A stretch of 64,000 bases of DNA from Cyanophora paradoxa CCMP329 (GCA_004431415.1 QPMI01000262.1:43823-107822), one strand, 5' to 3'. Shown: positions 129-30,236, counted from the first letter of the stretch. Program-made: numbers and translations. Notes: generated by a model from the letters alone, not told the origin.

Positions 129-2775
129 CTAGCGGCCAAGGAGGGAGACCTGGGGGCGGGGGCGGGCGTTGGGGGCAGGAGTCGAGGGGCGCGGGGCGCT
201 GAGAGACGGGGCGGGGAGCTGCGAGGGGGCGCTGCGGACCTTGCCGAGGTCGGCGGCGATGCGCCAGCCGCACGCGAAGCCGGAGAAGGCGACGGCGTTG
301 AGGCCCTGGCCGGGGAAGGTGCTGCGGTGGGCCCGCGTGAGGCGCGCCCGGCGCGGGGCGGGGCGGGGCGGGGCGGGGCGGGGCGGGGCGGGCCTGTCTC
401 CGACGCAGTAGAGGTTGGGGATCGGGGTGCGGTTGAAGGGCATCCCCAGGAGGCCCGGCAGCACCTTCGACGGGATCGGCCCGTACGTCCCGTCCGCCCG
501 CCCCAGGTACCGCCGGTGCGTGCGCGGGGAGCCGACCTGCCGGCGAGGCTCGGGGGCGGGGCGCGGGGCGCGGGGCGCGGGGCGCGGGGCGCGGGGCGGG
601 CCTCCTTGAACTCGACGGCGGCGCCGAGGCCCGGGAGGACGCGCTCCAGGCGGGCGATCAGCCGCCCGCGAACTCCTCCTTCGCCCGCTCGTACTCCGCC
701 GGGCCCAGGCCCTGCGCACCCGCCCGCCCCCGGTCACCCCGCCCGCGCCGCGCTGCGCCGGGGTGCGGGGCGGGGCGGGGCGGGACGGGGCGCGCTGGAA
801 GTCGTCGATGGAGGCGGGGGCGAAGGCGTGGACGATGTGGCGGCCCGGGGGCGCGAGGGAGGGGTCGAGGAGGGTGGGGATGGAGACGAAGAGCGTGCCG
901 GTGCCGTCCGTGGCCTCCAGGCGCGCCCAGTCCTCCAGGAGGATGTGGTGGCACTCCGTCCCCGCGGGCAGCGCCTCCGCCCGCACCCCCAGGTGCATCG
1001 ACAGGAAGCTCGGGCTCTTCTCGTACCGGCCCCGCCACCTGCCCCCCGCGCCCCGCCCCCGAGCCTCGGCATCCGGCGCCGCACGGCGGGGCCGGGCCGG
1101 GCGGGGCGGGGCGGACCACTTCTCGGTGATGGGCGTGCGCTCCTCGGGCAGCAGCTTCCCGAACGTGTCCCACCTGCGCCGCCCCCGCCCCCGCCTTCAC
1201 ACGCCGCACAGAGGCGCGCCCCGGGCCGCCCCGGCGCACCGCGTGGCGTTCGAGACGATGCGCTTCCCGCGGAACGTCCGCCCGTCCGCCGTCTCGACGC
1301 CTGCGGCCGCCCCCGCCGCGTCGTCGCGCTGAGGCGGGGGCGGGGCGGGGGCGGGGGCGGGGGCGGACCGACGGCGGCGCCGGCCTCGGTGAGGATGCGG
1401 GTGGCGCGGGAGCGGTAGCGGAGGCGGCCGAGGCCGGTCGCCTCGATGCCGCGGGCGAGCTTGGCGGCGATCTGGCCGACGCCGCCGCGCGGGTAGTTGA
1501 TGCCGCCGAAGTGGCGGTCGGAGAAGACCATGCCGGCGTTGATCATGGGGGTGCGCTCGGCGGGGACGACGCTCCAGCAGTAGCACTCCATGTCGATGAA
1601 GCGGAGCAGCTCCTCGTCGCGGATGTGCTTGCGGGCGATGGCGCCGACGTTGAGGGGCAGGTACTTGACGAGGCCGAGGCAGGCGAGCGGGTGCTCGAAG
1701 AAGACCCGCGCCAGGTACCGCGGCTCCTCCAGCGACAGCAGGTCCATCGCGTTCAGGCAGTTGAACACCGCCCAGCACTCGTCGTAGAACGCCCGGATCC
1801 CCGCCGCTGCCCGACGGTTCGGCGCCGAGGGCGGGGCGGGCGGGGCGGGGCGGGGCGCGCCTTCGTGGGGGAAGCGGGCGGAGAGCTCCGCGATGAACTT
1901 CTCGTAGTCCCGGTGCACCTGCCGCCCCTCACTCAGCGTTGGCGGCCGGCGCTGGGCGCTGGGCGGGGGGCCGGGCGCCTGGATGTCGAGGTCGTTGGGG
2001 AGGTGGTAGTCGATCTGCACGGGGTCCGGGATCGTCTCGATCTTCTCCCCCACCTGTGCACGCCCCGCTCGCTCACGGCCCGGGCGGCGCGCGGGGCGGG
2101 GCCGGGGGCGCACGAGGGCGAGGGCGCGGGTGAGGAGGTTCGTGGTGCCCTTGTCTCCGAACCCGAAGATCATCGAGGCGCCAACATCGAACGTGTAACC
2201 GTCCCGTTCGAAGTACGCCGAGCTCCCCCCGGGCACCACGTAGCTGGCCGATTGGGCGGTGTCGGCGCGCGGCGGGGACAGCGGGGGCGGGGGGCATCAC
2301 CTCTCGAGCACGAGCGTCTTCAGGCCCTTGGCGACGGTTTGGGCCGCTGTCGTGAGCCCGCCGATGCCGGAGCCGATCACAATCACGTCCCAGCCGTCGG
2401 ACTCCACATCCTCAGCAGCGCTCGCGGCGGGGGATTCCGTAGCGAGCGCAGCGGAGGTGAAAGCCGGGCCTGCGGAAGCGCACGCCGTGCAGGTCAGCCC
2501 CGCGCTGTCGGCCCTGAGCACGCGCACGGGCCGCCGAGGAGATTCTTGCACGCGCGCTCACCCTGGAAGGAGCGGGGAGCCCGCTTCCTGCTGGCAGCCA
2601 GCCTATTGGCATGAGCGAGTCCTTCGAACGACCGGAACTGCTGAGCGCGCCGCGCGCCGGGCTGGGCGATGCTCGCCCTGTGAACGCCGCTCGGGCCTTG
2701 AGCGCACCGCGCAGACGTTTCCTGCACCGCCGCGCGTGCGGGGGCCACGACGGGGGGCGCTACTGCGAAGGCCAT
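129..2775 (-). CDS. crtISO: Carotenoid (prolycopene) isomerase CrtH/CRTISO, plastid-targeted, multi-exon
   Basis: Exons join to MAFAVAPPVV (transit peptide)...WDVIVIGSGIGGLT (FAD-binding)...PGGSSAYFERDGYTFDVGASMIFGFG...FIDMECYCWSVVPAERTPMINAGMVFSDRHFGGINYPRGGVGQIA...YCVGD|STFPGQGLNAVAFSG. These are characteristic CrtH/CRTISO motifs. Last exon boundary is approximate. Confidence 0.93.
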
Positions 2776-2890
2776 TCGAACTTTTGTGTAACCCCCCGTG
2801 CAGAGTAAACTGAGAGTTGAAGAAGAGCTGTGCTCCCTTTAACGCATCTCAGGCGCTGCGGATTACAGTGTTCGACGTCTGGTTAAGGAT

Positions 2891-9773: not shown

Positions 9774-11503
9774 TCAGTTCTTCTTCGAGGGGACCTGCGC
9801 GCCGGCGGGTCAGGCGGGGCGGCGGCGGGCGGGGCGGGGCGGGCGGACCTTCTTGAGGTAGTCGCCGTCGATCTCGGGGAGGACGTACCGGAGCTGCTTG
9901 ATGCTGTAGCCGAGCGACTTGGCGACGGTGATCCACTTGAAGGGCGAGCCCTCCTCCGCCGCCACGCGCGTCGACGCCGCGCGCTTGGCGATCGCCGTCT
10001 CCGCAGCGCTGCCACCCGCCCTTAGTGAACAGGGCCGCCCGACCGCGGCGAAGCGTGGGCGCGGGCGCGCGCACCGGGGGAAGCCGAGCTTGCGGGCCCA
10101 GTCGGTGCCGTAGCGGGGGGTGGCGAGGCGGAAGGGGGTCTGGCCGATGGCGCGGCCCGAGAGGACGCGGTCACGCTGGAACGGCACGACGAAGTCTGCG
10201 GGGCTGGTTGGGAGGCGCGGCGCCGGCGGGGTGGGGCGACGAGGCGCGGGGGCGCCGGGCCGCCGGCGCACCGCCGAAGTTCTCCATGTACTCCTGCGAG
10301 TCCTGGAGGGCCTGGACGAAGCCAGCGACGCCCTCGTTCACTGCGAGCGCGTCAGCGGCGGCGGCGGGCGGGGGAGCGGGGCGGAGGGGGGCGGACCGAT
10401 GACGATGGACCAGGCGATGCACTCGAGCTCCGAGTAGACGTCGCGGCCGAGCACGCGCTGGATCACGATCTTCGCGAAGCTGCGCCGCCAGGCTCGGCGA
10501 GGGCGCGGCGCGGCGCGGCGAGGGGCCCGCACCGGTAGTTGTTGTTCGGCTGGAAGTTGAGCTCGAGGAAGGCGTTCGAAGTCACCTGCGGCGAGCCGTC
10601 AGGCTCGGACGAGCGCCAGGAGGGCCGGAGACGACGCACGAGGCCGAAGATGAAGTCCTTCACGGTGATCTCGCCGTTGCGGAACTGTCGGCGCGTGTCA
10701 GGCCGGTCGTCTGAATCTGTGCGCGCGGCTGTGGCGGCTATCACCTGGCTCTCGAGCGCCGGCTGCTTGGTGTACTTGATGCTCTGGTGCTACGCGGCGC
10801 AAAGGATATGGCGTCAGCTTTCGCGAGCAGATGACCAGACCTGCCAACCTCGGAGAAGATCTGGCGGTACGCGGCGTAGACGATCTCCTGCAAATGCTCG
10901 TCGTAAACAAAATGAAACAGAAAGCAAACAAATTAACTGGATAGCCAGGCACGCACATCGAGGTCGTCCGGGTTGGTGGTCTTCTCGATGCTGAAGTCCT
11001 TGGCCTTCTCATCGCTGATGGCCTGGCCGATCGCCGCCACACGGTTGTTCTGGCAGTTCGGCTTGTAGGCGATGAGCGGGAGCGCGGCCTTCACCTGCGA
11101 ATGCGCGCGACCATTAATTGGCAACCGCCGCCATAGACGCCCGCGGCGCCGCCGTCCGACTCCGCAATGCTCTCAGTCAACCGACTGATGCTATGCTGGA
11201 TGTAACACCTACGATTCGCCGGAATCCGACGGCCGCGCGAACCTCGAAGGTGCGGGCAGCCTGGAACGAGGCCGCCGGCTGGGCAACCGCCGCGCCGGAA
11301 AGCTCCTTACGGATGCCAGTCGACACAAAGTCGCTCTTCAGGACCCTGCGCGCGGCGCTCCGGCTGGTGAGAGGTCCGTGCCGATGCGTCGCGCGCAAGT
11401 TCCAATCCAGGGCTAAAGCGCTCGGGGGCTGGATTTCGCACTTGGTCGTCGGGGCGACGACGCCGGCCGAGGCGAGAACGGGGGCAGCGGTGACGAACGC
11501 CAT
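9774..11503 (-). CDS. cpcG: Phycobilisome rod-core linker polypeptide CpcG, nuclear-encoded with plastid transit peptide
   Basis: MAFVTAAPV...ARTFE|VKA transit peptide, then ALPLIAYKPNCQNNRV (CpcG N-terminus). Also AAYRQIFSE, LESQ|FRNGEITVKDFIFGL, NNNYR|F....IQRVLGRDVY, AWSIVI, EYMENFG, VPFQRDRVLSGRAIGQTPF..TPRY. Confidence 0.93.
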
Positions 11504-12069: not shown

Positions 12070-15000
12070 ATGGAGGCCTTCCTGCGGGTTTTCAACATCA
12101 ACTTGAACTGCTTCGACTGGGGGCGCAGCGATGACTCGGGGCCCCCGACTCCGATCCCGGAGCGCCCCCTGTGCGCGCCTTCGAAATCGGGGGTGCGGGC
12201 GCGCCCTGCCAGGCTGACCCGTCCCGTCCCGCGCAGGACGCCGCGGGAGAAGGAGCCGCCGGCGTCATGCCCGGAGCTGGCGGGCGCCCCGGGGCTCCCC
12301 GCCGAGAGCCCTAGCGCGGCCCCCGCGCCGGCCGAGCTGCCGCACAGCGCCTCGCTCGCCCGTTCCTCCTCGTTCCCCGTCGCGAGGCCCCACGTGCGCG
12401 GGGGCCCCTCCTCCAGGCGGCGGGCGGGGCGGGGCTGACGCGGGGCGGGGGCAGCACGAGGAGGAGAAGGACCGGGTGCGGCCGGGGTCGGGCTCCAGCG
12501 GCGGCGCCTCCTTCCCCGTGCTCGCCCTCACCGAGGAGCCGCCCGCCCCGCCGGCGGCCCCCGCCGCCCCGGCTGCGGCGAAGGCGGCGCCGGGGGCGAC
12601 CCTGGCGGCGCCGCCGGCGTCGGCGCCGCGGCTGTCGCCGGTGCCGGAGGAGGCGGCGGGGGGCGGGCACGCGGAGGCCCACCCGCGCTTCCGCGCCCGC
12701 GTCGTCTCCTGCCCCGGCGAGGTCCCCCGCCCCGCGCCCCGGCCCCGCCCGCCCCCGCCGACCCCGCGCAGCCCGAGGCCGTCGCTGCTGCCGCCGCTGC
12801 GGCCGCGGGGCCGGGGTGCTGCCGCGGGCGCCGGAGCTCGGGCTGGCGATCCGGACGGGGAGCCCGCACACGCCGGGGCCCGAGGCCTCGCCGGCCGGCA
12901 GGGAGGCGGCGACGCCCAAGGGCGAGGGCGAGGCCCCGGGCTCGCCGGCCGGCGTCGCGCGCAAGGAGCGCCGCCCGTCGTCGATCGCGTCGCTCGCGGC
13001 GGCGCAGAAGAGCTCGTTCCACTTCGCCTCGCGGTGCGCCCCGCGGGGCCGCCGCCCCGGCGGCGCGGGCTGACGGAGGGCGGCGGGGCGCAGGGCGTCG
13101 AAGGCGCCGGAGGCGGGCAAGCCGCCCGGCGAGGAGCGCATGAAGCGCCTCATCGACGTCGTCATGGCCGGTCCGCCCCGCCCCCGTCCCCCCCCCCGCC
13201 CGGCGCGGCGGGGCCTGGCGGGGGCCGACGGGGCGCGGCAGCGATCCCGAAGGCGATGGCGGAGGGGGCGGGGGACGACGAGGCGGCGATCGCGGCTCTG
13301 GTGAGCAACATCAAGACGTCGGTGCTGGAGGCGCGCGGGGCGGAGGAGCAGCGGCCGTCGAGCCGCGTCAAGAAGGACGCCCAGGTCGTCCTGAAGCGCA
13401 TCGAAGAGAAGCGCCTCGAGCACAAGGCCCGCCCCCGCCCCCGGCCCCGCCCCCGGGAGCCACCCGCCAGAAGCCCCGCCTTGGCTGACGCCTGCGGGTG
13501 CGGGGGGCCGCGCAGGTGCACTGCGCGCAGATCGCGCCGGCGGTGTTCGTGTCGATCGCGGAGGAGTTCGGGCTCGCCCCCGGCACCCTCAAGCCCTCGC
13601 AGCTCGTCCAGGCCCTCAAGCGCATCGGCTTCGACCACGGTGCGGCCCCCCGCCCCCCGGCCCTCGAGCCGGGCCGAGGCGGGGCGGGGCGGGCAGTGTT
13701 CGACCTGCGGTACGCGGCGGACGTGACGATCATGGAGGAGGGCAGCGAGCTCCTCGCCCGGTGCCCCCGCGCCCCCCCGGCCCGCCCCCGCTCCCCCGCC
13801 CCCCCTCACGCCCCGCCCCGGGCTCGGGCGCGCAGGCTCAAGTCGGGGGGCCCCTTCCCGATGTTCACGTCGTGCTGCGCCGGCTGGCTGCGCTCCGCGG
13901 AGGAGGAGTACCCGTGCGGCGGCCCGTCCCCTCCCCGTCCGCGCAGGGGGCCGAGGGGGCGGGCAGGGACCTGCTCAAGCACCTCTCCTCCTGCAAGTCG
14001 CCCATGACGATGAACACCAGCCTCGTCCGCCCGCCCCGCCCCGCCCCGCCCCGGCCCCCGCCGCCCCGCCCTCCGCGCCCCGCTGAGGCGGCCCCCGCCA
14101 GATCAAGTCCTTCTTCGCGAAGAGCATCGAGGCGGACCCCGCGACCGTCGTCGTCACCTCCATCATGCCCTGGTCCCCGCCCGAGGCCCCTCGCCGGGGG
14201 CGCCCCGGCCCGCCTGACGCTGCGGGGGGCGGGGCAGCACAATCAAGAAGGTGGAGGCGCAGCGGCCGCAGCTGCTGGAGGCGGTGCACCACACGGACCA
14301 CGTGATCACGACGCGCGAGCTGGCGGCCATCTTCCGCGCGATGGACCTCAACTGGGACGACCTCGACGGCGCCGGGCCCTCCTCCGAGTTGTCCGCCACG
14401 CTTCCCCACACGTTCCTCCACGTCTGCTCGCCCCGCTCCCGCCTCGCCGACCCGCGCCGGCAGCTCGTCGTGGATGGGCCCGGGCTCGGGGGCCGGCGGC
14501 ATCTTCGGCGTGACGGGCGGCGTGATGGAGGCGCTTTAACTCTCTCTTCTTTCGAGCTTGGACGAGCTTGGCCTGACGCAGCGGCAGGCGGCGCTGCGGA
14601 CGGCGTACGAGCTGGCGACGGGGAAGCCGCTGGAGAACGTGAAGATCGAGGAGCCGCGCGGGCTCTTCGGCCTCAAGGAGGGCGCCCTCGAGGTCGCGGG
14701 CGTCGGCGAGCTCAAGTTCTGCGTCGTCGACGGCCTCACCAACATCAAGCCCGCCCCGCCCCCCGCCCCCGCCCCGGCTCCTCGAGGCGCTTCCCGCTGA
14801 CCCCGCCCCGCCCTGCGGCAGGCGCGTGATGGAGCAGACGCGCGCCGGCGAGTGCCCCTACCACTTCGTTGAGATCAGTGCGCGCGCCCCGCCGCGTCGA
14901 ACCCGCCTGCACCGCGTCGGCGTCGGCGTGACGGCCTCCCCTCACTCCCTCGCTCGCGCGCGCAGTGATGTGCACGAACGGGTGCATCAGCGGCCCCGGG

Positions 15001-18000
15001 CAGCCGCGGAGCAAGGACAAGAGCATCGCGAAGCAGCGTATGAACGCGCTGTACACGGCGGACGAGCGGGCGGTCATCCGCAAGTCGCACGAGAACCCCG
15101 CCGTCAAGCGCCTCTACGACGAGGTCCGGCCCCCGCCCCCGCCCCGCGCCCGCCCCGCCATTGCCCGCCGCCTCCGCTGAGGCCCTCTCTCTGGGGCAGT
15201 TCCTGGGGCAGCCCCTCTCCCACGTCCGCGCCCCCCGCCCCGCCCCTCGGTCGCGCCGGGGCCGACGGTGCGGGGCGCGCAGCTCTCGCACGAGCTGCTG
15301 CACGTGGAGCACTGGCCGCACCACAAGCGGCCCGAGGGCGCCGCCAACGGCCACGGCCACGGCGCCGAGGGGATGGACAAGCACCAGCTCCAGGCGGGCA
15401 CCGCGGGCCGCGCAGCCGTTGCGCCGGCTGACGGGGCGGCAGGCGAGCTTCGGGGCGCTGGAAAAGGGCCTCGAGGCGGGGGCGGCGGCGGCGGAGCCCG
15501 AGGTGGTCTACGGCGAGGGGGAGGCCCCCGAGCCAGTCGCCTGGGCCCTGCCCCCGCCCGCCGCGCGCGTCGTCTACGGCTCGGAGACGGGCAACGCGGA
15601 GACGCTGGCGCGGGTGGTGGCGAAGGAGCTGGCGGGGCGAGGCGTGGCGGTGAAGTGCTCGGAGGCGGACGAGCTGGAGATGGACGAGCTGCAGGGCGTG
15701 ACGACGCTGCTCCTCGTCGTCTCGACGGCCGGGCAGGGCGAGCTCCCCGACAACTGCAAGGACTTCTACAGCGGCCTCAACCCCTCCAAGCACCCCAAGA
15801 ACTGGCTCCGCAACCTCCACTACTCGGTGATGGGGATCGGGGACTCGAGCTACGCCTTCTTCAACCGGGCGGCGGTGATGTTCGATGAGCGGCTCGCGCT
15901 GCTCGGGGCGCAGCGCTTCCGCGACCGCGGCGTCGGCGACGACCAGGACGAGGAGCGCTTCGAGACCGGCTTCGAGAAGTGGGCCCCCGGTGCGCCCGCC
16001 CCCGCCCCGGCCCGCTCCGGCGGGCCTCACCGCGGCTGCAGCGGTCTACAAGGCGCTCAAGCTGCCGCCCATGAAGGAGGACAGCACCGGTGCGCCCCGC
16101 CGCCACTCGCCCCGTGCCGCGCACTGACGGGGCGCCGACGGCAGTCGGCCCGCCCTCGCACAAGGTCATCCTCACGACGGGCCCCAACGTCACCCGCAAG
16201 TTCGAGGCGCGCCCCGCCCCCCCGGCGCCCGCCGGCCGGCCGCCGGCCTGACGTGCGGGCGCGCAGGAGGGGTGGCGGCCGATCCTGGCGGACGGCTCGG
16301 CGCAGCTGATCCGCCTCGACTCGAACGTGCGCATCACGCCCGAGGGCTACGACCGCGACATCCGCCACCTCACCTTGTCCGCCGCCCGCCGCCCGCCGCC
16401 GCCTGCCGGACCCGCCGCGGGCGGGGCTGAGGGTGCGGGGCCCCCGGGGGCACAGCGAGGTGCGGGACGTGCCGGAGCAGCTGAAGTACACGGTGGGGGA
16501 CGCCCTCGCCATCTTCCCCCGCAACGACCCGGGGGAGACGGCGGCCTTCCTCAAGTGGTTCGGCCTCGAGCCGACGGACCTCGTCTCCTTCAAGGTCAAC
16601 GAGAACTACAAGGGCGACGCCAAGCCGCGGCCCCCGCTGCCCCCGGGGACCACCCTCCTCGACTACGTCTGCGACTGCGTCGACCTCTTCGGCCGTCCCA
16701 ACGCCCGCTTCTTCGCCGCCCTCGTCCGCCCCGCCCCGCCCCGCCCCGCCACCTCGAGGGCGCGCGCGACGCGGGGCGGGGCAGGCGAAGTTCGCGACGG
16801 ACGTGCACCAGCGGGAGGAGCTGCTGGCGATGGCGGCCAAGTCGTGGCGCGGCACGGCGGCCTTCGCCGTCCTCCAGAAGGACGTCGGGCAGGTCACCTA
16901 CGCCAGCCTCATGTCCAGCTACCCCTCGGCCCGCCCCTCCCTCGCCCAGCTCCTCGACCTCATCCCCCCCATCAAGCCCCGCTACTACTCGATTGCCTCG
17001 TCCCCGCACGTCGTGCCGGGCAAGCTCGAGCTCTCCGTCGTCATCGTCGACTGGGAGAAGCCGGACAAGAGTGTCGGCTACGGCACCTGCACCGGCTACC
17101 TCCGCCAGCTCGTCGACGGCCCGCACTGGGGTCCGCCACCGCCGGCCCCGGGCCCGCCCTGGGCCGACCGGGCCTGACGCGGCGCCGCAGTTCCCGTGGC
17201 GCTCAAGCCCGGCGTCGGCATCTGCATGCCCCCGCACCCCAGCACGCCCATCGTCATGGCCGGCCTCGGCACCGGCCTCGCCCCCATGCGCGGTGCGCTC
17301 GCCGCTGCGGCGGCCTCCCCCTCGCCTCGCGGGGCGGGGGGCGAGCGGGGCCTGCTCGCTGGCGCAGCGATGGTGCAGGAGCGGTGGTGGCAGGTGGTGC
17401 ACGGGAAGCGCGTCGGGCCCTCCGTCCTCTTCTTCGGCTGCCGCCACTCCAAGGCCCGCCCCGCCCCGCACCGCGGCCCCCCGCCCCCCCGCCCCCGCGC
17501 CCCTGAGGCCCCGCCCCGCAGGGCGACTACCTCTACTCCTCCAAGTGGTGCGCCCGCCGGCCGCGCGGGGCAGGGCGCGGGCGGCTGACGCGGGGGGCAG
17601 GGACGAGTACGTGCAGCAGGGCGCCCTCTCGCACCTCCGCGTCGCCTTCTCCCGCGACGGGCCCAAGAAGGCCCGCCCGCACGCCGCCTCCTCGCCGGCC
17701 CCGCTGCCCGCCTCGGGCCCCGCCCCTCACCCTCCCCCGCCCGCGCAGGTGTACATCCAGGACAAGATCGCGGCGGAGCCGGAGCTGCTGTACGACTGCT
17801 TCGTGAAGCGCGGGGGCTACTTCTTCTTCTGCGGGCCCGCGGGGCGCGTGCCGCAGGACATCCGCGCCGCCATCGAGACCGCCATGTCCGAGGCGAGCCG
17901 CGCCCCGCGGGGCGCGCGCGGCGCCTCGCTGGGCTGACCCCGGGGCCCGGGGCGGGGCGGACGGGCAGGCGGGCAAGGAGGAGGGCTTCACCAAGGAGAT

Positions 18001-18122
18001 GGCCTCCCAGTACATCGACAAGATGCGCCTCCAGGTGCGCCCCGCGCCCCGCAGCCCCCGCGGCACCCCGCCGAGGGCCCCGTCCCCCGCAGGGCCGCTA
18101 CATCATCGAGGCCTGGTCGTAG
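12070..18122 (+). CDS. hydA: [FeFe]-hydrogenase (H-domain) fused to C-terminal flavodoxin + FAD/NADPH-binding diflavin reductase module
   Basis: Spliced H-cluster motifs: [43 protein letters not shown]|[17 protein letters not shown]|AALRT, FVEI|[34 protein letters not shown]. Then flavodoxin YGSETGNAE...STAGQGELP...GIGDSSY..FN, and FNR-like [37 protein letters not shown]|[17 protein letters not shown]. One probable homopolymer frameshift near 12810 in the low-complexity N-terminus. Confidence 0.92.
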
Positions 18123-23335: not shown

Positions 23336-23949
23336 CCGGCGGCCGGCCCAGTCAGAGCCCGAGCAGAGGCCGCCGGCGTGCTATATATATAGCTCACTAT
23401 ATATAGCTAGATAGGCTGATCGATGATCGCGATCGCGATGTGTCTGCGATGGTGTCTGCAATGATATCGATCGTGATGTGTCTGTGATGGAGCGCACGGT
23501 GCACCATCCAACGAGCTCCGACGTCGACGTTTGTAGGCTTAGGCCTAGCCTAGTAGGGTAGGCAGATAGCATTAGCTGTTTGTCAACTTGGGGCATCAGT
23601 CCCCTAATATATACACTAGGGATTATAATTACCAAACAAAAAACGCGCATCGAGCTGGGAGGCACGGTGGGAGCTCCGGGATCCGATGCGCATCCAAACA
23701 TCTCAATCGTAGATGTAGTTGATGCGCATGCCCGATCGCGACATGCTCAAAGACGCCCCCACCACGCGCAAGAAGCTATAGAGAAGCGACTGTGCATGTG
23801 ATCGCGAAAGACGGGTACAGCAAGCGATTGTTAGTAACAAGCGTCGAATTCAAGCTCAAGCTCATGCTTGTTGGCTTAGAGTCAAGCTTGGTCAGCATAT
23901 TTAGGCCATGCATTTGTCAAAGGCCACACATATGTCAAATTAAAGGCCA

Positions 23950-26900
23950 CAAATTGCACGTAATTTCAGATTGAAACAGCGCAATGAAGGAGACAGATTG
24001 ATTGACACAGTACGCTTAGAACTTGAAAAGATAGTGAGCAGAAGATGCGAAATTGGAAAGCGAGGCCTTGAGCTCCGCAAGACTGGCTTCAAGCTTCTCC
24101 TGGCCAGCCTTAAGATTCTGGAGCTCTTCTTTGCTCTGCTCCTGGAAAGCTTCCAGATTGCGAGGCAAGTTCTCCACAGTGAGCGCCAGCTATGCGTGTG
24201 TCAGCTTTGAGAAGGGGAATTCTCGAGAGTTCCAAGAGTTCTGCACCTTCAGCGGACCAGGTGGCAGAGGATCAGGTCTTTCTGTCGCTTTGTTGTATGC
24301 AAGGGGGTACTTCAACACGAGGAAATCCGGATCCGGTTCATCATGATCAGTGGAATTTGAAGGATTTGCAAGCCGGGCTTTGCGATGGAATTCAATGGCC
24401 TTCAGCCAGGAAGTGAGGGCCTTCAGCTGCGCAGTACTCTGCTTCTCCTTTTTCTTGTCCGGGGCAGATCGGGAGAGGTACGAGATTCCAAGGGCGAAAA
24501 GCAAGAACGGAAGAAAAACAACGGCCGAGATCACATTGACAAATGCTTGAGCGAGACGTGGTGTTGGACTCAAAAGAAGCCAAATCAGGTTCAGTGGAGC
24601 AACCAGGCGGCGGTCCATTCGATGATACCGCAGAATGATCTGAAGGAGCAAATGTCTGCACAGGGCTTGAATGAAGCAGCAAACTAAAGGCACACCTTTG
24701 CGCGCCCAAATGCATGCACATGCTTTGAGTTTGTAAAGATGTCTGTGAAGGTGAAACTGGCAGCTCAATCAGCATAATCAGCTCAATCAGCTCAATCAGT
24801 GAGTACGGACCTGAACAGACCAGTGAGTACGTTTAGGAGCAGGATGACCTGCGCTAAAAATTAATATATTGAGGTAGAACCATTTGCTGTGTTCACCGTC
24901 ATGATCTGGTAGATCGAGAAAAATGCTGGACCTGGTAAATTGATTTGTTATGTCACAACAGAGAAAATCAACAGAGAAAGGGAACCAATGGACCAACGAA
25001 AGGGACGTGTGTACGCATTAGATCATAGTCACTCTCTCCTAGAATAGCATAGTAAAGCGAGCCACTGTGTGAGAGCAGGTTAGAGTCAAGTGAGCCACTG
25101 TTTGAGATGGGTGCGACAAGAACTAACGCACGCAGTCTCAAGCAAAGTAATTGGCGTTGGCATGTCGGAGTTTTCAACATTGGAATGGTCCACAAATGAG
25201 GTGGACCAACCCCAGACTGCAAACATAAAAGACACGAAGACGACAACAAATACAATGAGGACTGAGAAAACGTTTTGGACCATCTAATTGAAGATTAGAA
25301 AAAAAGGCATAAAAGGGACCAGCATTTTTTGGAAGCGCACGCGGCCAAAGACAACCAGCATAGGGCCTGAATTGTGTTTAAGAAAAGGTGAGAGCAAACG
25401 TTTGAGCTCCAAACAGCAGGAACACACCAAACATAGGATTGACATATCCGAATTCGAGAAGTCGGAGAGAAGCTGGAATAAAAACTGTGTTCAAAGCTGT
25501 CAGTTATTATAAGGTGCAGCTTCTGCAATAACCACACCAAGGGCGAGAATGGGGATAACTGTATCTGCAACATGCCTCCAGGATGAGACTACCTGCACGT
25601 GGGCAGTGGTCACGACACAAAGAAAAGAAAACTGAAAGTTTGATGAAGACCTCTGCAACGATTCCCAGGATGGCAAGAAGCGGAGTAGAAAGGAAAAGGG
25701 CGAGGTCGAAGAGATTGAAGATGTCACTGAAGTAATCGTGGATGCCTTCCTCCCGTGCCTAGTGAAGAGCGAGATGAGATGTGCCTGGAAGATTTACAGG
25801 TATAAAATACACCTGGGAGAATTCTCTTAAAAGCATGCAAAAAGCCTGAATTGCAAGGAGGGCAAGAACAAGAAGCCGTGCACTCGACTTGCCATGCTCC
25901 CCATGGCCAGCTAGATCTAAATTCGAGACAGCTGCTTGCAATCAAAAAAGCGATTAGGAACTTTGAGGGGACTGGGAATACCACCAAGGGCAATGAGTAA
26001 GAGGAAAATAATATATGTCGTCAAATCAGCCGCGAACTTGCCCTTCCAGCTGTTCAGAGGGTGTCCAGGCATCTCCCACCACAGCTTTCCCACATTATTA
26101 TCATGCGGTTCGAGTGCTGTATCTTGCTCCTTGTCATTGACGTTGTTCAAACTCTTGTCTGTCAACATCTTGTCATCTGAACAAGAAGAGAACACCTTCT
26201 GAACAAGCGACACGAGCACACTGGGAAGCAGTGAAACAGCCTACAGGACAATTAAACAGGAAGAAGCTTCAAGTGGCAAATTTAAATGCATACCTGCATC
26301 TCGGATGCACTCTCAGATATGCGTTGTATGTAGCGGTGGACGAAAGGATGGCCCTGTGCATCAGTTGTTTTGGGTTGGGCCCGGTTTGGGTGACATTCGG
26401 GTACCATAAAGGAGTAGAGATTCAGCTCAATAGCAATATCGAGAGGGCTTCCAATGCCAGGTAGGCGATGCTCAAGAATCTAAGAGATAGGCCTTCAGGA
26501 TGATTACTGCAAGATACAGTAGAACGATTACGCACATCAACAGAGTCGAATAAGGGACCCTCCTGGTCTAAAGCTTTCGAAAAGGCCGGCTCCTGTTCGA
26601 TTTTCTTCATTTGCCTTTCATACACCTGTTATGCCAACTCAGATCAGATGAAATCGAAGGCTCAGATCAACTCAGATCAACCAAATGAAATCGAAGGCTG
26701 ATCCAGATTCAGCCCACCTGTTCAGCATGCCAGGTATCAAGAACATCATTTTTGGTTAACTCTGTGCACTTGTGCAAGCGGTCTGGCAGTTTCTTCTCAT
26801 CCGCCTCAATCCTGCGACATGATTCCATTATTGAGATCTGCAACAAGATCGCATGGCAGGTGGTTTGCACGAGAGAGACCGCATAGCCCCCACCCAAGGG

Positions 26901-28163
26901 GCCATGCGACCTTCTCCTTCGAGCAACAGTGCTCGACGCTGAAGCCGGTCCACAAAAAGCTGTCCCATTGCGTCCAGCAGCTGAGGTCGGGATGTCGTCC
27001 AACAGCTCAGAACCAGTGAGTGATGTATTTACCTGATTGGCGGTCTCGATAGCTTCATCTCGATGTTCAAGAATAAGAGATGCCTGATCTGGATTCACCT
27101 TGGCTGATTCCTGCATGGCATCCATGAAATTTAAAGGTGTCACCATGCAAACAAAAAGGCAAAGCAGACGGACCTCAAGAAGGCGAGCAAGGTGCAGGGC
27201 GCAGTGAAGTTTGAAGGAGGGAAACTTCGAGACCACAAGTGCAGGCCGACATTCAGGCCCAACTGCATCAACAATGCGACCACAAATGGCGGCAAGCCGA
27301 CTTGGCGAGAAGAGAACATGCGGGCATTCGAGGAAAGGGTCCAAGAGGGCGCTTTGCTGCCAGCTGAGGGCATGTTCAAAGGCAGTTCCGCCATCTTTGT
27401 CCTTTAAATCCCATGCAGCACCCTTCTCCAGCAGGAGCTTTGCTGCATCTGGCTCCCCTGCCCAACAGGCTTGAAAGAAAGCAGTTCGACCAGAACCATC
27501 CAGCGCCTCCAGATCCACTCCTCGTTCAAGAGCCTCCCTGCACTCTCCCTTCATCGATAGCCAGGACAGGTCGGCATGTACAAGTTGCACACCGCATAAC
27601 CGAGACCTGACCATAACAGGCGCTCAAATGTAGTATAGTGCCGTTCGCAATGTTGGTGCTGAGGTATCCAGCACGTGCATCGATCGGGCACCCGAGCTCG
27701 AGTAGATGCCTGCTTTTTGAAGTTCAATTTGCCAAGCAGGTTGAATGCAGGTTACATCAGAAACACAGCACCAGAAGATCTGTGATCCGGAGCAGGCAGC
27801 TGCATGGATGGGCAGCTGGCCGCGGTCATCCATCTGCATGGGGTCTGCCCCGCGCTGAAGCAGCAGCCGCGCAATGGCATCGTGGCCTTTGAAGCACGCT
27901 CTAAAGAGCGGCGCTTGACCGAAAGGAGCACCGTCAACTTTAGCATTCACAGGCTGTCCCTGGTCGAGCATTTTCCTAATCGCTGCATTCGCTTGTGCGA
28001 AAAAAAGAGCTAATCATGAAGAGCACCGGACAGCGTTGATGTCTCCTTTATTGAGAGCATCGAACAAGCTCGCGGTCGAGTTCGCGGCGCCGGCTGGGGC
28101 GCCGGCCACAGATGCTGGATTTGGAGCTGCCGAAAGAAGGGGCACACGGTCTTCGTTGGCCAT
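23950..28163 (-). CDS. Ankyrin-repeat transient receptor potential (TRP)-like cation channel
   Basis: MANEDRVPLL... then ankyrin repeats (GQAPLFRACFKGHDAIARLLLQRGADP; GRTAFFQACWAGEPDAAKLLLEKGA). TM region: DYFSDIFNLFDL (S2-S3), LLRLLEF...FG|PMLVVFGR|MVQNVFSVLIVFVVVFVSF (S4-S5), SLYYAILGE (pore helix), VILLLNVL (S6), then a C-terminal coiled coil. 3' end is approximate. Confidence 0.82.
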
Positions 28164-29024
28164 GAGCGAAGGCCCCTCTGATCAGCGTCAGTTCCGATCG
28201 AAAGCGTGCGCAGTTCCGATCGAAAGCGAGCGCACCGGTCTCGTACGCCGGAACGAAGGTGACGACGGGAGCACCTGCGCAAGGCATACAGCCGCTCAAT
28301 CGGCTGGTGAAAGGCACCGTCCGGTGAATGCGACGCACCTGGACGTGCGGATGACGAACCAGCCCGGACGAAGGAGTACTGGCCCGGTCGAACCAGGAAT
28401 CGGGCCAGGCCGCCAGAATGCCCATGATTCCTCGACATGGAGGGCAAGCTGCTGTACAGCCAGGAACTGTACTCAGGGTTCTGTTTGCCTTGAGTCTGCC
28501 TACCCCTTGAGTGATCGAGGGGTAGGGGCAAACACAGCTCGACTCACTGCGGCTAACGTTAACGGCAGCGCTCTCCTCCAAGAGGCGGCAGCGCCGGCGT
28601 GGCGCCGTCGATTAGAGGCATGAGCGACAGCGCTGCGGGCGCCAACAGGACGCACGCGCGTCGTAGACATGCGGTGCGCTCGACGGGCGGTGGCCTCCGG
28701 TCCTCCGCGCGGTGCAAGCTGTCAACACTTCGACGCGCAGCGCCATTGGACGGACGAAGAGGCTGTGGCTGCATTCGAGAGGACGTCTAATTTCTTGAGG
28801 AAACGAAGCTTTAGCGAAGGTAATTGAGAAGCTTTTGATCGAAAAAGCGCCAAACTTGGCTGATACTCTCCGCAGTCAATGTTCGGCGACATCCCCGCAG
28901 ACCGCTATCCCCGTCCAGCGAGCCCCATCGAGCTCAGAAAGCCGTGACCATCCGCAACGGGCGGCAGCGGAGGCCCGTCCCGGTCCTGCGCCAGCCCCAG
29001 CGCCGCCCTCGCAGCCAATCTGAT

Positions 29025-30236
29025 GTCACCTACGCCAACCTCATGTCCAGCTACCCCTCGGCCCGCCCCTCCCTCGCCCAGCTTCTCGACCTCATCCCCC
29101 CCATCAAGCCCCGCTACTACTCGATTGCGTCGTCCCCGCACGTCGTGCCGGGCGAGCTCGAGCTCTCCGTCGTCATCGTCGACTGGGAGAAGCCGGATAA
29201 GAGCTTCGGCTACGGGACCTGCACGGGCTACCTTCCGCCAGCTCGTCGACGGGCCCCACTGGGGTCCGCCGGCCCCGGCCCCGGCCCCGCCCTGGGCCGC
29301 CCTTGCCTGACGCGGCGCCGCAGTGCCGGTGGCGCTCAAGCCCGGCGTCGGCATCTGCATGCCCCCGCACCCCAGCACGCCCATCGTCATGGCCGGCCTC
29401 GGCACCGGCCTCGCCCCCATGCGCGGTGCGCCCGCCGCCGCGGCCTCCCCCTCGCCTGGCGCCGCGGGGGGCGAGCGGGGCGTGCTCGGTGGCGCAGCGA
29501 TGGTGCAGGAGCGGTGGTGGCAGGTGGTGCACGGCAAGCGCGTCGGGCCCTCAGTCCTCTTCTTCGGATGCCGCCACTCCAAGGCCCGCCCCGCCCCGCA
29601 CCGCGGCCCCGCCCCCCTGAGGCCCCGCCCCGCAGGGCGACTACCTCTACTCCTCCAAGTGGTGCGCCCTCCGGCCCCGCGGGGCAGGGCGCCGGCGGCT
29701 GACGCGCGGGGCAGGGACGAGTACGTGCAGCAGGGCGCCCTCTACCACCTCCGCGTCGCCTTCTCCCGCGACGGGCCCAAGAAGGCCCGCCCGCACGCCG
29801 CCTCCTCGCCGGCCCCGCTGCCCGCCTCGGGCCCCGCCCCTCACCCTCCCCCGCCCGCGCAGGTGTACATCCAGGACAAGATCGCGGCGGAGCCGGAGCT
29901 GCTGTACGACTGCTTCGTGAAGAGCGGGGGCTACTTCTTCTTCTGCGGGCCCGCGGGGCGCGTGCCGCAGGACATCCGCGCCGCCATCGAGACCGCCATG
30001 TCCGAGGCGAGCCGCGCCCCGCGGGGCGCGCGCGGCGCCTCGCTGGGCTGACCCCGGGGCCCGGGGCGGGGCGGGCGGGCAGGCGGGCAAGGAGGAGGGC
30101 TTCACCAAGGAGATGGCCTCCCAGTACATCGACAAGATGCGCCTCCAGGTGCGCCCCGCGCCCCGCAGCCCCCGCGGCACCCCGCCGAGGGCCCCGTCCC
30201 CCGCAGGGCCGCTACATCATCGAGGCCTGGTCGTAG
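29025..30236 (+). pseudogene. 5'-truncated, frameshifted duplicate of the hydrogenase-fusion 3' end (FNR/NADPH-binding exons)
   Basis: Colinear with 16893-18122, including introns and stop codon. A +1 T (TACCTTCCG vs TACCTCCG, about 29233) shifts the frame. No upstream exons or start. Confidence 0.85.

Follow-up and report, generated by a model that had tools for sequence, protein, structure and literature searches.

Single-chain fusions of an [FeFe]-hydrogenase with a CysJ-like reductase have been described in Stygiella, Trichomonas, Pygsuia, Pelomyxa and Paratrimastix (PMC4989108; PMC10579272; PMC10703272), and the later of these papers, which contain no assay, define them as NuoG-HydA-CysJ proteins (PMC10579272; PMC10703272). 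In these long protist hydrogenases, the H-domain is followed on one chain by flavodoxin, FAD and NAD(P) modules, and the enzymes are predicted to be cytosolic and have been hypothesised to be linked to NAD(P)H. The databases also hold hydrogenase-CysJ fusions of the diatoms Nitzschia and Amphora (P0245, P0242 and related metagenome proteins), which bear an F-domain and are not described in the papers searched; the reductase of these diatom proteins lacks the NADP signature. A different design is represented by the M1 enzyme HydA1 of Chlamydomonas, a stand-alone plastid protein that consists of an H-domain only, with no F-domain, and is fed by the ferredoxin PetF. The M1 enzymes were held in 2023 to be chlorophycean only, the glaucophyte ones being larger (PMC10744039). 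For the glaucophyte Cyanophora paradoxa, HydA and the maturases HydE, HydF and HydG have been reported, the architecture not being given (PMC8003979), and the 2019 Cyanophora genome paper does not mention hydrogenase. In the literature searched, outside which lie several subscription papers including the 2012 genome paper, there is no description of a glaucophyte fusion protein, and H2 production is not reported for C. paradoxa.

The window analysed here, 64,000 nucleotides of DNA from this phycobilisome-bearing alga (a host type that the earlier note had named correctly), contains at positions 12070-18122, in a GC-rich and intron-dense locus on the plus strand, a gene of 31-32 exons that is delineated by an exon walk and by the public model tig00001095_g7031.t1 (EukProt P0155, 1330 aa). 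Domain searches were made with single exons, and the whole-protein alignment, tree and folding work with P0155, which was reached via a 1199-aa paralog that was itself matched in the exon 19 search. The HMM scan recovered Fe_hyd_lg_C, Fe_hyd_SSU, Flavodoxin_1 and FAD_binding_1 on single exons and, additionally, NAD_binding_1 in P0155, and all the motifs quoted in the earlier note (48 and 10 residues, the tail, the linker, SR..K.YIQD and EAWS) were found. Judged by its sequence, the enzyme is built like the protist fusions yet fails two of their defining features, the F-domain and the ancestry of the reductase. The earlier note treated a fusion in an oxygenic alga as surprising, which overstated the case, Nitzschia and Amphora already having versions with an F-domain; the idea of a hydrogenase-CysJ fusion is known, and what differs here is the absence of the F-domain, the PNO-type reductase and four substitutions in the H-domain.

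The first of these features is evident upstream of the H-domain. The N-terminal extension (aa 1-321; 12070..13426) is acidic and Ala/Pro-rich, has no Pfam match and no CxxC, and its final approximately 75 residues are similar to the paralog P0001. That the F-domain is missing, as had been proposed, is borne out by the presence of only 3 Cys in the 320 residues ahead of the H-domain, and this segment is free of CxxC in every glaucophyte copy, whereas it carries the CxxCxxC motifs of an F-domain in all non-glaucophyte fusions retrieved. P0163, considered as a second F-domain-free fusion, was discarded as a truncated gene call with CxxCxxC upstream.

The H-domain (Fe_hyd_lg_C; 13516..15006, exons 7-16) and the small-subunit-like tail (Fe_hyd_SSU; 15022..15303, exons 16-18) were both delineated with Pfam. 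All three H-cluster motifs and the four ligand Cys are present: P1, TSCCAGW (13867..13887), in which both Cys are retained; P2, MPCTIKKVE (14165..14262), interrupted by an intron at 14173-14237; and P3, of 16 residues (14871..15006), interrupted by an intron at 14878-14965. The proton-path residues Cys/Glu/Ser/Glu/Arg and the pocket residues Met, Lys, Phe and Met are retained in Cyanophora, Cyanoptyche and Gloeochaete, the H-domains of which are 60-64% identical to each other, the sole exception being an Arg-to-Lys change in paralog P0001; the catalytic residues also all align with those of HydA1. The closest solved relatives of the domain are hydrogenases (E 4e-105). With TIGR02512, the whole protein scores 347 bits against a cut-off of 406, and the match begins at model position 74 because the Fe-S part of the model is absent in the protein. 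Nar1/NARF proteins lack the TSCC double Cys and the di-iron pocket and have a Cys-rich N-terminal cluster. TSCC, the pocket Met and Lys and the small-subunit tail are all present here and an N-terminal CxxC is not, which agrees with the earlier assignment to a hydrogenase-type rather than Nar1-type core; by its ligand, proton-path and pocket residues, the H-domain is assignable to the group-A [FeFe] type.

Four positions around this conserved core, missed in the earlier note, set the glaucophyte enzymes apart. Phe332 (13546..13548) replaces the Arg of APAVR, which is found in 241 of 241 other H-domains; Ala399 in P1 replaces a Pro found in 239 of 239; Ile455 in P2 occupies the site of the Ala of MPCTAK (235 of 236 others; a ferredoxin-docking Arg in HydA1), which is Ile, Leu or Val across the glaucophyte copies; and Pro609 in P3 replaces the middle Gly of GGG, elsewhere 239 Gly and 4 Ala. 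Met600 of P3 is unusual as well, and the glaucophyte copies carry Met ahead of the third ligand. R332F, P399A, A455I and G609P occur in all glaucophyte copies; in 236-243 other H-domains, a comparison set in which bacterial A3/A6-type and protist enzymes are over-represented, these sites are 98-100% fixed. For three of the four, the nearest cubane ligand is two to four residues away. At such near-invariant sites, the substitutions could alter or weaken catalysis; they also offer ready natural probes of H-cluster tuning. Two of the sites correspond to HydA1 Arg96 and Arg171 (mature numbering) and are hydrophobic in the glaucophyte enzyme, which thus differs from HydA1 in the loss of two surface Arg as well as in being fused. 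Arg96 is presumably a ferredoxin-docking residue, like Arg171. The docking role of Arg171 has been reported (PMC12924338). The equivalent of a further ferredoxin-docking residue of HydA1, Lys396, is present in some copies only, being kept in P0155 and lost in Gloeochaete.

The H-domain is followed by a His/Gly-rich linker of about 65 residues (15304..15568), which spans an intron at 15394-15442 (GC-AG, phase 0) and is predicted to be disordered apart from one helix, the counterpart of the helix that links PFO and flavodoxin in PNO. The reductase comprises a flavodoxin (FMN) domain in exon 19 (15569..15982; Pfam E 2e-32), FAD-binding and connecting domains with the RYYSIASS and GTCT motifs (16267..17130), and an NADP(H)-binding domain with GxGxAP, SR..K.Y, the catalytic Cys (CGP) and the C-terminal E-A-W-S (17191..18122). 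Its alignment with cytochrome P450 reductase spans the full length (E 4e-76), and its predicted structure has the closed P450 reductase fold (TM 0.85 by target; mean pLDDT 89.8), the placement of the H-domain against it being left loose by the model (pTM 0.61, linker pLDDT <50). For the Cyanoptyche protein, the ESM Atlas yielded no usable match. The FMN, FAD and 2'-phosphate motifs are present as in PNO; the FMN loops, the FAD motif, the catalytic Ser/Cys/acid, the shielding aromatic and the fold all match a PNO-type diflavin reductase. The NADP-type signature recognised previously, SR..K.Y, is in place and aligns with that of P450 reductase, and this motif would point to a preference for NADP(H); the three other fusions checked have SHD at this position instead.

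The relationship to PNO was assessed in a tree with other diflavin reductases as the outgroup and with Met10 (no flavodoxin), Trichomonas and Pygsuia left out. Outside its own clade, the nearest relative of the reductase is the C. paradoxa PNO P0292 (tig00021621_g22964), with 588 bits as opposed to 476 for the next; the two are 55% identical in the flavodoxin and 46% in the FNR part. In the mixture-model tree, the glaucophyte modules group with P0292 and one metagenomic PNO with support of 100/100, within the PNO clade, and the reductases of the other hydrogenase fusions, with Trichomonas and Pygsuia outside the trees, form a clade of their own (99/93). A single clade of all fusion reductases was rejected (p-AU 0.00013, LG+G4). 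The resemblance to PNO on which the earlier note had remarked is therefore matched by the position of the module beside the Cyanophora PNO, which shares with it the linker helix and the EAWS end but has as its N-terminal partner PFO with its own Fe-S clusters and no H-domain. The reductase module is shown by these results to derive from PNO.

The history of the H-domain is less constrained. In trees that did not include Nar1, green M1, Trichomonas and Pygsuia sequences, the glaucophyte H-domains form one clade with support of 100. Enforcing a single clade of the H-domains of all fusions gave p 0.57, the constrained tree outscoring the free one, and uniting glaucophyte and green-algal H-domains gave p 0.38, the green members in the tree being M3 only. 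We do not claim a wholly independent fusion: the H-domain trees fit an independent event and, equally well, loss of the F-domain from an older fusion together with replacement of its reductase. No stand-alone H-domain of the glaucophyte clade was found among the best 120 matches in a search of 8000 candidates (200-640 aa); these 120 were all bacterial and about 50% identical. As a tentative scenario, to which we give somewhat less than even weight, a PNO reductase would have been attached to a bare H-domain in a glaucophyte ancestor and the cubane surface reshaped, such that a swinging FMN feeds the H-cluster with neither relay nor ferredoxin.

We hold, with modest confidence, that the protein is an active [FeFe]-hydrogenase, linked to NADP(H) within one chain and probably located in the cytosol, that reoxidises PNO-made NADPH in dark hypoxia at low H2, a reading in which we infer the loading with cofactors, the activity, the location, the domain swing, the direction and the pairing with PNO. 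Hydride would pass from NADPH to FAD and single electrons from FAD to FMN; the tethered flavodoxin domain would swing out, as in cytochrome P450 reductase, and dock on the exposed [4Fe-4S] subcluster of the H-cluster, directly because no F-domain lies between. In P450 BM3 and nitric oxide synthase, too, a diflavin reductase of the same fold comes after a catalytic domain, and these proteins provide the model for the swinging FMN domain, but their acceptor is a high-potential haem whereas the H-cluster is a low-potential one. With an FMN couple near -270 mV, as in diflavin reductases, the step from FMN to the H-cluster would be uphill. The presence of HydE, HydF and HydG in C. paradoxa and of a PNO almost without an N-terminal extension (P0292) favours the proposed reading. 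A cytosolic location is probable from N-terminal composition only: each fusion begins with an acidic or a short N-terminus, in contrast to the neighbouring plastid protein; Phe at position 4, similar to glaucophyte plastid peptides, counts against this location. Reoxidation of the NADPH made by PNO would complete a ferredoxin-free route from pyruvate to acetyl-CoA, CO2 and H2, which would run only while H2 is low. The reaction is reversible in principle. If E0' is taken as -320 mV, H2 at equilibrium amounts to 67 Pa for an NADPH/NADP+ ratio of 1 and to about 2700 Pa for a ratio of 40, both above the 1-10 Pa quoted for methanogenic habitats (PMC6288185); since natural H2 is usually below the equilibrium value, slow H2 release would be the likelier job.

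The same wiring might instead serve uptake, turning H2 from neighbours in hypoxic water or a biofilm into NADPH. The module is of PNO descent, and in PNO it delivers to NADP+ the electrons of a [4Fe-4S] cluster of low potential, the downhill direction (PMC6732389). However, uptake would be favourable only at H2 above roughly 70-2700 Pa, which is rare around a freshwater alga, and a hypoxic photosynthetic cell is, we presume, usually rich in reductant; we regard an uptake function as unlikely. The same low probability attaches to a retuned H-domain that acts as a slow or sensory H2, O2 or redox unit, with the reductase serving as a diaphorase. The four clade-wide substitutions at otherwise 98-100% fixed sites (236-243 others) would be compatible with such a role, as would the more decayed motifs and missing C-terminal aromatic residue of paralogs P0157 and P0159 and a protein of the same clade with seven H-domains, P0003, which is hard to account for by flux; yet the catalytic and proton-path residues are all retained in three genera, the fusion has no signalling output domain, and the set against which the substitutions stand out is biased to A3/A6-type and protist enzymes. 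Less probable still, the joined halves could exchange electrons through a soluble carrier (ferredoxin or flavodoxin) or from one chain to another, given that green-algal bare H-domains are fed by soluble ferredoxin (PMC10744039), that the Lys396 equivalent is retained in P0155 and that the structure model shows the closed reductase only; against this stand the hydrophobic residues at the Arg96 and Arg171 equivalents, the loss of the Lys396 equivalent in Gloeochaete and the retention of the fused flavodoxin in every copy. H2 release fed by NADPH thus remains likelier than uptake or a retuned H-domain, which rank together, and these in turn likelier than transfer through a carrier.

The protein suggests a ferredoxin-free fermentation by PNO and hydrogenase in glaucophytes, and it shows that hydrogenase cores without an F-domain extend beyond green algae to a deep archaeplastid lineage that has been credited with larger enzymes. 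Nature offers no simpler system in which to ask if NADPH can be connected directly to the H-cluster by a flavin domain, a question that spans all hydrogenase-CysJ fusions, and, provided that the enzyme is active and its sensitivity to O2 can be managed, it would be a useful one-gene converter between H2 and NADPH for cofactor regeneration.

The gene is real, expressed and conserved across three glaucophyte genera. It starts with ATG at 12070, with an in-frame stop 60 bases upstream, and ends with TAG at 18122. An exon-by-exon frame walk showed a single open frame of 1096 codons in 27 exons from 13095 to the stop at 18122, with introns of 49-89 nt. All 30 introns in the walk end in AG, and they begin with GT (22) or GC (8); walked exons 1-3 and 5-31 are all contained in P0155. 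Exon 4 (12772-13033) shifts frame near 12815, where the public model excises an 86-nt GT-AG intron (12816-12901); this predicted intron lacks the C-rich tract of the neighbouring introns and encodes a plausible peptide in another frame, and the frame shift could instead stem from a 1-base assembly error within a run of G. Spliced contigs from three runs, presumed to be RNA, were mapped to the gene. They have at least ten intron joints spliced out, and contig edges fit six further exons. Exons 1-2 are covered by a contig, and 12726-13125 by none of those mapped. The first approximately 230 low-complexity residues are predicted to be joined to the rest of the chain, a join that is less sure because of the frame change in exon 4 and this interval with no contig.

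Further downstream, one RNA contig connects the flavodoxin with the FAD domain (15470-16936), and another covers 14966-15121 and continues for 80 letters, which would reach about 15340; the joint between H-domain and flavodoxin, 15340-15470, is bridged by no RNA contig among those listed, and the read depth in bin 15326-15525 is compatible with a bridged as well as an unbridged joint. Beyond what the earlier note recorded, the architecture recurs across three glaucophyte genera as well as in several paralogs within Cyanophora; the same chain is encoded by one ORF on intronless transcript contigs in Cyanoptyche gloeocystis (P0274/P0156) and in Gloeochaete wittrockiana (P0275/P0158). These orthologs, compact at 1011 aa (Cyanoptyche) and 1052 aa (Gloeochaete), settle the single-chain design, which the earlier note had proposed and with which the open frame at 13095-18122 agrees. 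A merger of two adjacent genes by gene prediction, to which the absence of a listed RNA contig across 15340-15470 and a Met in exon 18 could point, is very improbable given that no stop occurs near the end of the H-domain (unspliced read-through extends for 201 codons, in the wrong frame), that there is no intergenic gap and the joint intron is a phase 0 GC-AG intron, that exon 19 has no in-frame Met ahead of the FMN loop, and that in each ortholog one ORF on one transcript contig spans the whole chain.

At least four C. paradoxa paralogs, all in the glaucophyte clade, reside on other contigs. P0001 (tig00020995) looks intact; P0157 and P0159 (tig00021537) are adjacent and degenerate, with an altered P2 motif and models that lack the C-terminal aromatic; and P0003, of 4122 aa, has seven H-domains, three flavodoxins and one FAD domain. 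In the window itself, a reductase match at 29025-30236 on the plus strand is not another gene but a truncated duplicate of the 3' end that starts midway through exon 24, retains the introns and extends to the stop. It is 94.6% identical, has a 1-base insertion in exon 24 and contains no hydrogenase or flavodoxin part. Variants at 16952, 16997 and 17022 in run X7 agree with this duplicate. At 17405, RNA run X1 carries the base of the duplicate, which may reflect either transcription of the fragment or a polymorphism at this site.

The PNO-type module seems to be often reused as a plug-in NADPH adaptor. P0027, from another eukaryote, joins an FAD oxidoreductase to a reductase of the PNO type, and a hybrid cluster protein of C. 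paradoxa is reported to be fused to a sulfite-reductase-like part (PMC8003979).

Among the neighbouring genes, a phycobilisome linker gene with the plastid-type N-terminus MAFV (about 9780-11503, minus strand) lies head to head with the hydrogenase gene, the starts being 567 bases apart; its PBS_linker_poly match is weak (E 0.008, one exon piece). An intron-rich gene at about 230-2780 (minus strand) resembles by eye a carotenoid isomerase (CrtISO/CrtH); one of its exons gave no Pfam match. Immediately upstream of the truncated duplicate is a block of lower GC content (46-61%; about 23500-28600), which is possibly mobile or recently inserted and inside which ankyrin-like coding sequence is discernible by eye at about 27800-28160 on the minus strand.
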